Below, piece by piece: positions 5,281 to 14,783 of a stretch of 64,000 nucleotides of DNA. A program made the position numbers and the translations under genes. The stretch's first letter is position 1; each line of letters starts with the position of its first letter. The stretch is from sequence record OZ196285.1. One strand, given 5' to 3'. Under the pieces are notes generated by a model. It saw only the letters and a list, made by a program, of their open reading frames with translations. It made no database searches and was not told the origin of the DNA.

Positions 5281-5332
5281 AAAAGGGTTGCTTCGGCAAC
5301 CCTTTTCTGTTTTAATAGCTCTATCGAAACGA
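5281..5332 (+). promoter_or_regulatory. Stem-loop/promoter cassette (PeSL-like), copy 1
   Basis: AAAAGGGTTGC-TTCG-GCAACCCTTTT with TTGCTT in the stem, then AGCTCTATCGAAAC; near-identical at 19991 and 49569. Confidence 0.8.
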
Positions 5333-5401
5333 AACGACGAAAAAAGTTTAACGCTTAAACAATATACATTATACTAGCATTTCATTGAGAGAGATTACAT
5401 T

Positions 5402-13704: not shown

Positions 13705-14085
13705 ATGGACATTATTAACAAACTTGAAATTCAATTACCAGACGACGATGCCTTTCTAAAGATTCGTGAGACTCTTACACGAATTGGCATCGCCAATAAC
13801 AAAACGAACACGCTATATCAATCGTGTCATATTCTTCAAAAACGTGGCGTTTACTACCTAGTGCATTTCAAAGAGCTTCTTGCTCTTGACGGTCGCTGTG
13901 TGGAAATCACTGCTGAAGATATCGAGCGTCGTAACAACATTGCGAAACTGCTTGAAGATTGGAGCTTGTGTTCTATCGCACACCCTGAGTCACATGAGTT
14001 CAGCGGTGACAATAAATTCCGTGTTATTTCTTTCCGTGAGTCTAAAAACTGGACTCTACGTTACAAATACAAAATCGGGGGTTAA
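13705..14085 (+). CDS. regA: Translational repressor RegA
   Basis: FLKIRETLTRIGIAN, LYQSCHILQKRG.YY.VHFKEL. Confidence 0.97.
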   Translation: MDIINKLEIQLPDDDAFLKIRETLTRIGIANNKTNTLYQSCHILQKRGVYYLVHFKELLALDGRCVEITAEDIERRNNIAKLLEDWSLCSIAHPESHEFSGDNKFRVISFRESKNWTLRYKYKIGG

Positions 14086-14089
14086 ATGC

Positions 14090-14188
14090 GTGAAGAAAAT
14101 GAAGGTTGGTCGTGAAGAGGACTGGGGTCTTGAAGTCGGTCGAGAAGAAGACTGGCTATACATTGGTCGCGAAGAAGACTGGTTTTAA
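14090..14188 (+). CDS. Small peptide with three GREEDW repeats (GTG 14090 or ATG 14099)
   Basis: MKKMKVGREEDWGLEVGREEDWLYIGREEDWF*; repeats use different synonymous codons; terminator follows. Confidence 0.65.
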   Translation: MKKMKVGREEDWGLEVGREEDWLYIGREEDWF

Positions 14189-14196
14189 CTGAAATG

Positions 14197-14217
14197 GGGC
14201 TTAATTGCCCCTTTTAT
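14197..14217 (+). terminator. Terminator-like hairpin
   Basis: GGGGC-TTAATT-GCCCC-TTTT. Confidence 0.7.
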
Positions 14218-14231
14218 TTGAGTATTATATT

Positions 14232-14783
14232 ATGCAAGAACAAGAGTATTTCGATAAACAACTAGTGCGTGGCGGTATCTTCGAAGATGCAGTCGTACCA
14301 CTACTCTCCAACATGTTTAGAGCGCGTGATGAACATAACAACGTTCCACAAGAACAGTTCAGCACGATCATAAACACCGCAACATCAAAAACAGACAGTG
14401 AGCACGGGCGCGGACAGCGTTTGATGTACTGTACTGACAATTCTTGTAGTTACATGTTACCTGACGTATTCATATTCGCTCAGGGTAAGCAGTATGCAGT
14501 CGAAATTAAGGTCAAAAAACGCTTCTATCGTCACACAGACGGTTATTTGTACGGTGTGATAGATTCATACAAGATTGAAGACTACGACGGCGCTGTGCGT
14601 CTCATGGGCTTTAATTCGCTATTGTATGTATTTGGTGCTGAGACTGAAGATAATAACGTTTATCTTGGTCAACCATCACAAGCACGAGAGATCGTAATTC
14701 ATGATTTCCGCGATAAGAAGAACCCAAAGGGGTTGTTTCATGCATGGCGAATTAACGATATGCAAACAATCGGAAAATGGTAG
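14232..14783 (+). CDS. PD-(D/E)XK-fold nuclease-like protein
   Basis: G.IFED helix, LPDVFI, AVEIKVK; ATG at 14232 preferred over TTG 14205. Confidence 0.6.
   Translation: MQEQEYFDKQLVRGGIFEDAVVPLLSNMFRARDEHNNVPQEQFSTIINTATSKTDSEHGRGQRLMYCTDNSCSYMLPDVFIFAQGKQYAVEIKVKKRFYRHTDGYLYGVIDSYKIEDYDGAVRLMGFNSLLYVFGAETEDNNVYLGQPSQAREIVIHDFRDKKNPKGLFHAWRINDMQTIGKW

Follow-up and report, generated by a model that had tools for sequence, protein, structure and literature searches.

A micro-ORF with one to three acidic-tryptophan motifs follows regA in KVP40-like Vibrio phages

Directly downstream of regA, KVP40-like phages of Vibrio carry a micro-ORF of 8 to 32 codons, with one to three copies of an Arg-Glu-Glu-Asp-Trp motif. 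Comparison of its sequence between lineages identifies it as a genuine protein-coding ORF under protein-level purifying selection, whose translation we infer. It represents a new small-ORF family, confined to one vibriophage clade. The role that we tentatively favour for its product, in these KVP40-like (schizo-T4) phages, is that of an accessory, regA-coupled, disordered short-motif peptide, most likely a free docking peptide acting in trans.

Results

Three motif copies between regA and a hairpin in phage F86

The window, a stretch of 64,000 nucleotides, is 100% identical to the genome record of Vibrio phage F86 (OZ196285.1), a KVP40-like ('schizo-T4') myovirus. Window coordinates equal record coordinates minus 62000, and all features lie on the plus strand unless stated otherwise. 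The local gene order is 46, two small genes, 45 (clamp), 44 and 62 (clamp loader), regA, the micro-ORF, a gene for a 183-aa protein and 43 (DNA polymerase). The micro-ORF thus closes a clamp-loader/regA operon, with gp45, gp44, gp62 and regA encoded upstream, as the preliminary description of this DNA had it. The regA gene (13705-14085) encodes a translational repressor of 126 aa, whose homologues match Pfam Translat_reg; its stop codon anchors the micro-ORF in all relatives.

The triple-motif ORF spans 14090-14188, with 32 codons if read from GTG 14090 or 29 if read from ATG 14099, and its stop TAA lies at 14186-14188. The first two copies of the motif, G-R-E-E-D-W, are found at 14108-14125 and 14138-14155; the third, at 14165-14185, carries a terminal Phe (G-R-E-E-D-W-F), the 18-nt unit itself being 14165-14182. 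The three 18-nt units differ only by synonymous changes (CGT/CGA/CGC and GAG/GAA): translation reproduces the 32-codon peptide quoted before, and codon comparison its three synonymously spelled copies. The degenerate E-E-D-W 12-mer, GARGARGAYTGG, occurs three times in the 64-kb window, always in the micro-ORF, for 0.02 occurrences expected by chance. No similar motif was found in other F86 proteins across about 93% of the genome. The predicted structure of the 32-residue peptide shows no fold (pLDDT 51), which fits the acidic-aromatic short linear motif proposed in the preliminary description.

A Shine-Dalgarno-like GGGGG lies within the last regA codons (14077-14081), 8 nt before GTG 14090, as noted earlier, and 4 nt before ATG 14086; relatives have GGTGG, GGAG or GGCGG at this position. 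ATG 14086 abuts the regA stop, which is where the micro-ORF starts in relatives, and opens a 9-codon ORF (14086-14115) in a different frame, overlapping the start of the triple-motif ORF. Compared with two-copy relatives, the 5' end of the F86 form has two indels that do not add up to whole codons; for this reason the ancestral ATG now opens the other, 9-codon frame, and the triple-motif frame must begin at GTG 14090 or ATG 14099. ATG 14099 has no obvious Shine-Dalgarno sequence, GTG 14090 is well spaced from GGGGG, and three codons are candidates for the F86 start: ATG 14086, GTG 14090 and ATG 14099.

The micro-ORF is already present in the public record as VPHF86_0110, with its start at ATG 14099. 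That gene callers would miss it, as had been supposed, is therefore wrong for F86, and true for its relatives. The annotation alone proves little, because the record has a second call of 29 codons that coincides with a hairpin: the CDS VPHF86_0096 (5288-5377) covers a strong 9-bp hairpin with a T-run (5282-5305) directly after the preceding gene, and is probably spurious.

An intrinsic-terminator-like element, GGGGC-loop-GCCCC with a T-run (14196-14219), follows the micro-ORF, in agreement with the terminator described earlier. Its 5-bp all-GC hairpin (14196-14211), continued by TTTTATTT, starts 7 nt past the stop codon and is equivalent in position to the hairpin directly after regA in T4 and D479. 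A gap of 2-13 nt between stop and hairpin is the norm for genes in the F86 window, so the spacing of the micro-ORF is not special.

Two further features of the locus were discarded. A minus-strand ORF (14056-14163, 35 aa) is a product of the F86 repeats only and is impossible in one-copy relatives. The small hairpin formed by each F86 repeat folds no better than shuffled sequences, and one-copy forms do not have it.

Distribution in related phages

A BLAST search with the KVP40 slot aligned over the whole micro-ORF in 28 of 47 records from related phages. We read its sequence in 17 records or contigs, and deduced the form in the rest from identical alignment statistics. A one-copy form of 8 codons (Met, a variable residue, then R-E-E-D-W-F) occurs in KVP40, V09, PVA8, VH1_2019, V07, VS1, VS2, QD01, ValKK3, phi-Grn1 and nt-1. 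Two copies are found in K566, with 15 codons, and in D483 and 6E35.1a, with 16 codons and the ending W-L-I. These shorter homologues are unannotated in the other records inspected, those of KVP40, nt-1 and ValKK3 included.

Two more variants were recovered through the downstream protein. In a Logan contig, the closest known relative of F86 (its neighbouring protein is 74% identical), an ORF of 5 codons is linked through an overlapping ATGA to one encoding M-R-R-D-E-D-W-L-I, the stop of which overlaps the hairpin stem. The slot of Vibrio phage 1.081.O contains a 9-codon ORF ending E-E-L-W-D and a second, acidic ORF of 27 codons that ends just before the hairpin.

The position of the micro-ORF is constant: its start is always at the regA stop, and its end 0-7 nt short of the hairpin or, in the Logan contig, within the stem. 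Every lineage except F86 has an ATG 1-2 nt past the regA stop, preceded by a GG-rich stretch. D479 and T4 have no micro-ORF; there the hairpin follows regA directly and the regA stop is equally far from it. In 12 of the 47 records a minus-strand mob-type homing endonuclease (PEG79 of phi-pp2; PMC3468402) replaces both micro-ORF and hairpin, and in 7 a 145-aa ORF stands in place of the micro-ORF. Replaced or absent in related records, the micro-ORF is therefore dispensable.

The slot between regA and the next gene is itself a swap site, where the endonuclease or another ORF takes the place of micro-ORF and hairpin. In endonuclease-bearing genomes the 3' end of regA is recoded; PVA8 has the recoded end yet keeps the micro-ORF, in what looks like a co-conversion tract. 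We also observed that KVP40.0081, as annotated in RefSeq, starts in overlap with the micro-ORF stop and runs across the terminator hairpin; an ATG about 40 nt further downstream agrees better with relatives and with the protein alignment.

Outside the clade, tblastn against phages, a search of a 5.8-billion protein set, phmmer against 1.84 billion representatives and two metagenome pattern scans returned no relative. In Pfam, PHROGs, Rfam and both large protein libraries the sole match was the query itself, and 79 distant regA loci from IMG/VR were all without a comparable ORF. When IMG/VR and GTDB were scanned for the exact EEDWF-stop spelling, unrelated hits came up about as often as expected by chance, and none from the genome scan was in Vibrio. 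Neither annotation of the short forms nor literature on them was found, and a literature search for the motif letters returned only noise.

The gene downstream, VPHF86_0111 (14232-14783, 183 aa), lies between regA and gene 43 and belongs to phrog_18573, with no Pfam match. Its model has a predicted PD-(D/E)XK fold like that of Hjc/RecU-type Holliday-junction resolvases (Foldseek E about 2e-4), with Asp78, Glu91 and Lys93 invariant. Homologues of VPHF86_0111 occur in this Vibrio phage clade only, and the gene does not co-vary with the micro-ORF. An immunity or inhibitor pair formed with the Hjc-like nuclease was rejected on these grounds: in ValKK3 another gene lies downstream of the micro-ORF, and in phi-pp2 and R11Z the nuclease is present but the micro-ORF is not.

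Selection on the peptide and a possible constraint on its codons

Among 15 tabulated motif copies, the codon preceding the acidic block encodes Arg, spelled AGA, CGA, CGG, CGC or CGT, except for one Ser and one Asn; the chance of at least 5 Arg among 7 distinct spellings at that site is 8.5e-5. Elsewhere in the motif, copies differ by synonymous changes (GAG, GAT) or by conservative ones (Glu to Asp; Phe to Leu-Ile). The forms of KVP40, K566 and D483 differ in length by whole codons. Five spellings of one Arg, together with indels that keep the frame, indicate that selection acts on the peptide, and extend to relatives the earlier claim that the repeat is kept at the protein level.

Start, frame and stop are kept across lineages, with synonymous or conservative changes, the exception being F86, where the start has moved. 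The claim of a frame maintained in relatives accordingly holds for the whole-codon indels among KVP40, K566 and D483; it does not cover the 5' end of F86, with its two indels of a net length not divisible by three, although we do not regard the ORF as broken there. The internal copies are intact both in F86 (all three) and in K566 (both), though the neighbouring protein is only 54% identical between these phages. A rough count, rather than a formal estimate, would put dN/dS near 0.1.

The synonymous sites of the E-E-D-W-F block (window 14111-14185 and the copies of relatives) are more invariant than codon usage predicts. GAA accounts for 28 of 29 Glu codons, and every W-F copy has TTT, even though TTC is the Phe codon that the window prefers. 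Such unusual invariance hints at a superimposed nucleotide-level constraint, which may add to the selection on the peptide in this block.

Comparison with clamp-binding tails

The preliminary description had named the trimeric gp45 clamp among the possible docking partners. The clamp-binding tails of F86 end in LESFFG (gp43), LQKFYD (gp55) and LGKWV (gp33), with Leu-x-x-aromatic-hydrophobic in common. The peptide keeps the aromatic-hydrophobic pair and has Glu where the tails have Leu; two of its three copies are internal, and it does not conform to the tail motif. Since Glu occupies the Leu position, docking on the clamp is conceivable but unsupported, and from this comparison of tails the peptide is probably not a ligand of gp45. 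Two other observations weaken the proposed link: most relatives have a single copy, and the C-terminal Phe gives way to Leu-Ile in the D483 group and the Logan contig.

Discussion

A proposed free peptide acting in trans

The favoured reading can be put as a sequence of steps. Ribosomes would reach the micro-ORF by coupling to regA, through a start 0-2 nt past the regA stop or through a chain with another micro-ORF. The product would be disordered and strongly acidic, built from one to three units in which a hydrophobic residue comes after Arg-(Glu/Asp)-Glu-Asp-Trp. Each unit may dock its Trp and the adjacent hydrophobic residue in a pocket, and lay its acidic run on the basic rim, of a conserved phage or host protein, where the peptide would compete with the natural ligand of this partner, be it a nucleic acid or a protein tail. 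Duplication of the unit would then raise avidity; the occurrence of one, two or three copies in different relatives fits such a tuning of valency, already implied when the motif was called multivalent. The peptide would be an optional modulator rather than a core function.

Gene position designates two candidate partners, RegA and the gp45 clamp. RegA is a reasonable candidate because its RNA groove is basic and aromatic (PMC3014915) and because translational coupling would fix the stoichiometry of the two products. A bolder version, which we hold to be a long shot, takes the 8-residue form as a functional primary product, and hence as smaller than any phage gene known; the peptide, co-translated and stoichiometric, would modulate RegA or a replication/late-transcription hub, mimicking RNA or a protein tail by its acidic and aromatic residues, with the copy number of 1 to 3 as an evolutionary avidity dial.

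Several points count against action in trans. A free peptide of 8 residues may be short-lived in the cell. The F86 triple form depends for its translation on GTG 14090 or ATG 14099. To these must be added the dispensability of the ORF, its invariant synonymous sites and the restriction of the motif to this single product over the part of the F86 proteome covered.

Very small phage peptides with specific protein targets, in the host or in the phage itself, offer a precedent; the 26-residue Stp of T4 and the arbitrium peptides are examples. The micro-ORF product has no sequence relation to them and no signal or processing features, and its 8-residue form would be smaller than any of them as a primary translation product. 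The acidic C-terminal tips of single-stranded DNA-binding proteins (bacterial SSB, gp2.5 of T7) dock onto partner proteins. In general terms they resemble the micro-ORF peptide, as acidic runs ending in a hydrophobic or aromatic residue; unlike them, the micro-ORF has no fixed terminal residue (Phe, or Leu-Ile). The tail of F86 gp32 is acidic and without Trp.

Alternative explanations

The main rival to a trans peptide is a device in cis, for which the translation of the ORF is what matters. Ribosomes that continue from regA up to the base of the hairpin would protect the 45-44-62-regA message at its 3' end, or would cover the 5' arm of the hairpin and thereby adjust read-through into the nuclease-like gene and, beyond it, gene 43; release might in addition be slowed by the nascent peptide. 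We consider this unlikely, if a serious contender, since it accounts for both the position of the ORF, always between the regA stop and the hairpin (0-7 nt, or overlapping the stem in the Logan contig), and the invariance of synonymous sites at the nucleotide level. The regA stop of T4 and D479 lies at the same distance from the equivalent hairpin. There is also a precedent in the 7-codon mccA, where ribosome occupancy controls the adjacent terminator and the stability of the message (Zukher et al. 2014, PMC4231749). Against it, ribosome traffic alone needs neither a conserved peptide nor conserved internal copies, the short gap between stop and hairpin is a genome-wide norm, and some phages have lost both ORF and hairpin. 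No antiterminator pairing was found in the fold of 14060-14240 (z = -1.6), and the alignment of relatives has no conserved segment complementary to either arm of the hairpin. A classical attenuator was discarded for the same want of an alternative pairing and for the ordinary spacing. Attenuator, Trp-sensing and arrest leaders (of the trp leader or TnaC type) do resemble the micro-ORF, being tiny, with a Trp codon near the stop and a terminator just downstream. In contrast to them, it lies at the 3' end of an operon and its residues by the stop vary (W-F, W-L-I or W-D), while 8 residues, the commonest length, are too short to span the exit tunnel. The product is therefore a poor candidate for a ribosome arrest peptide: variable terminal residues and variable length fit a ligand better.

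The resemblance to mccA raises another possibility, already ranked low in the preliminary description, namely the precursor of a modified peptide: leaderless, microcin-C-like or modified by a radical-SAM enzyme, with one core per repeat. A 7-residue precursor encoded before a terminator is known (mccA, PMC4231749), and both loci have a functional or conserved ORF of fewer than 10 codons with a terminator hairpin directly after it. Yet MccA serves as substrate for an adenylating enzyme encoded next to it, has a C-terminal Asn and comes first in its operon, whereas the micro-ORF closes one, encodes an acidic-Trp motif duplicated in some phages and ends in Phe or Leu-Ile. Its neighbours are RegA and the Hjc-like nuclease; there is no adjacent MccB-like (E1/ThiF-type) or other maturase, and no export or immunity gene. 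Several radical-SAM proteins are encoded in F86, more than 60 kb away, and the ORF is all that separates sister phages such as KVP40 and phi-pp2. Finding no support for such a precursor, we hold it to be very improbable indeed. The F86 radical-SAM genes and an NAD-salvage cluster (record coordinates 138794-140812, 149776-150831 and 160347-161216) show no link with the micro-ORF.

A peptide that mimics clamp-binding tails would fill the ligand pocket of the gp45 trimer and compete with the tails of gp43, gp55 and gp33. Its encoding in the clamp/clamp-loader operon, its aromatic-hydrophobic end and the match of three F86 units to a trimeric clamp all suggest it, and known clamp ligands of T4-type phages are likewise short, with 'hydrophobic and acidic C-termini' (Geiduschek and Kassavetis 2010, PMC2988020), a description that the shared motif of the F86 tails matches. 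We nevertheless find it improbable: the micro-ORF product is a free peptide rather than a tail, it has internal copies and a Glu for the Leu of the F86 tails, and one or two units are usual among phages that share this clamp. Competition with the polymerase tail would moreover bring no obvious benefit, and the ORF is dispensable.

That the micro-ORF has no function of its own, and is a neutral or slowly decaying insertion between regA and the hairpin, open by chance or by recent common ancestry, would agree with its dispensability and restricted distribution, with a swap-prone slot that also hosts a homing endonuclease, and with the rearranged start in F86. We give this little credence, as the Arg codon was turned over with its residue kept (p about 1e-4), and the motif, with its duplicated copies intact, was kept between lineages as diverged as F86 and K566.

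An RNA element may be envisaged as well. The sequence directly 5' of a hairpin and U-run is laid out as in 3'-UTR small RNAs, and the purine-rich block GAAGAAGAYTGGTTT, upstream of the terminator and nearly invariant at synonymous sites, could be the seed of a small RNA derived from the 3' end, or a repeated protein-binding RNA site, with the ORF incidental. It is very unlikely in our view, for it leaves unexplained an Arg spelled in five ways, a conserved ATG and frame-preserving indels. There is no Rfam hit and no complementary site in sense orientation in F86, and the fold z-score of -1.6 (14060-14240) is not significant. An extension of RegA by read-through or frameshift is excluded, because the frame of the micro-ORF relative to regA is 0, +1 or +2 depending on the lineage.

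Significance

Even well-annotated reference phages, here KVP40, nt-1 and ValKK3, contain conserved ORFs shorter than the 30 codons at which gene callers set their limit. If the micro-ORF had its role in cis, it would be a phage case of the ribosome-terminator coupling known from mccA. If instead a peptide is produced that works in trans, its gene would be among the smallest functional genes of any virus, and it would itself be a natural motif peptide, whose valency differs between sister phages, in the best-studied gene cluster of the T4-type phages.
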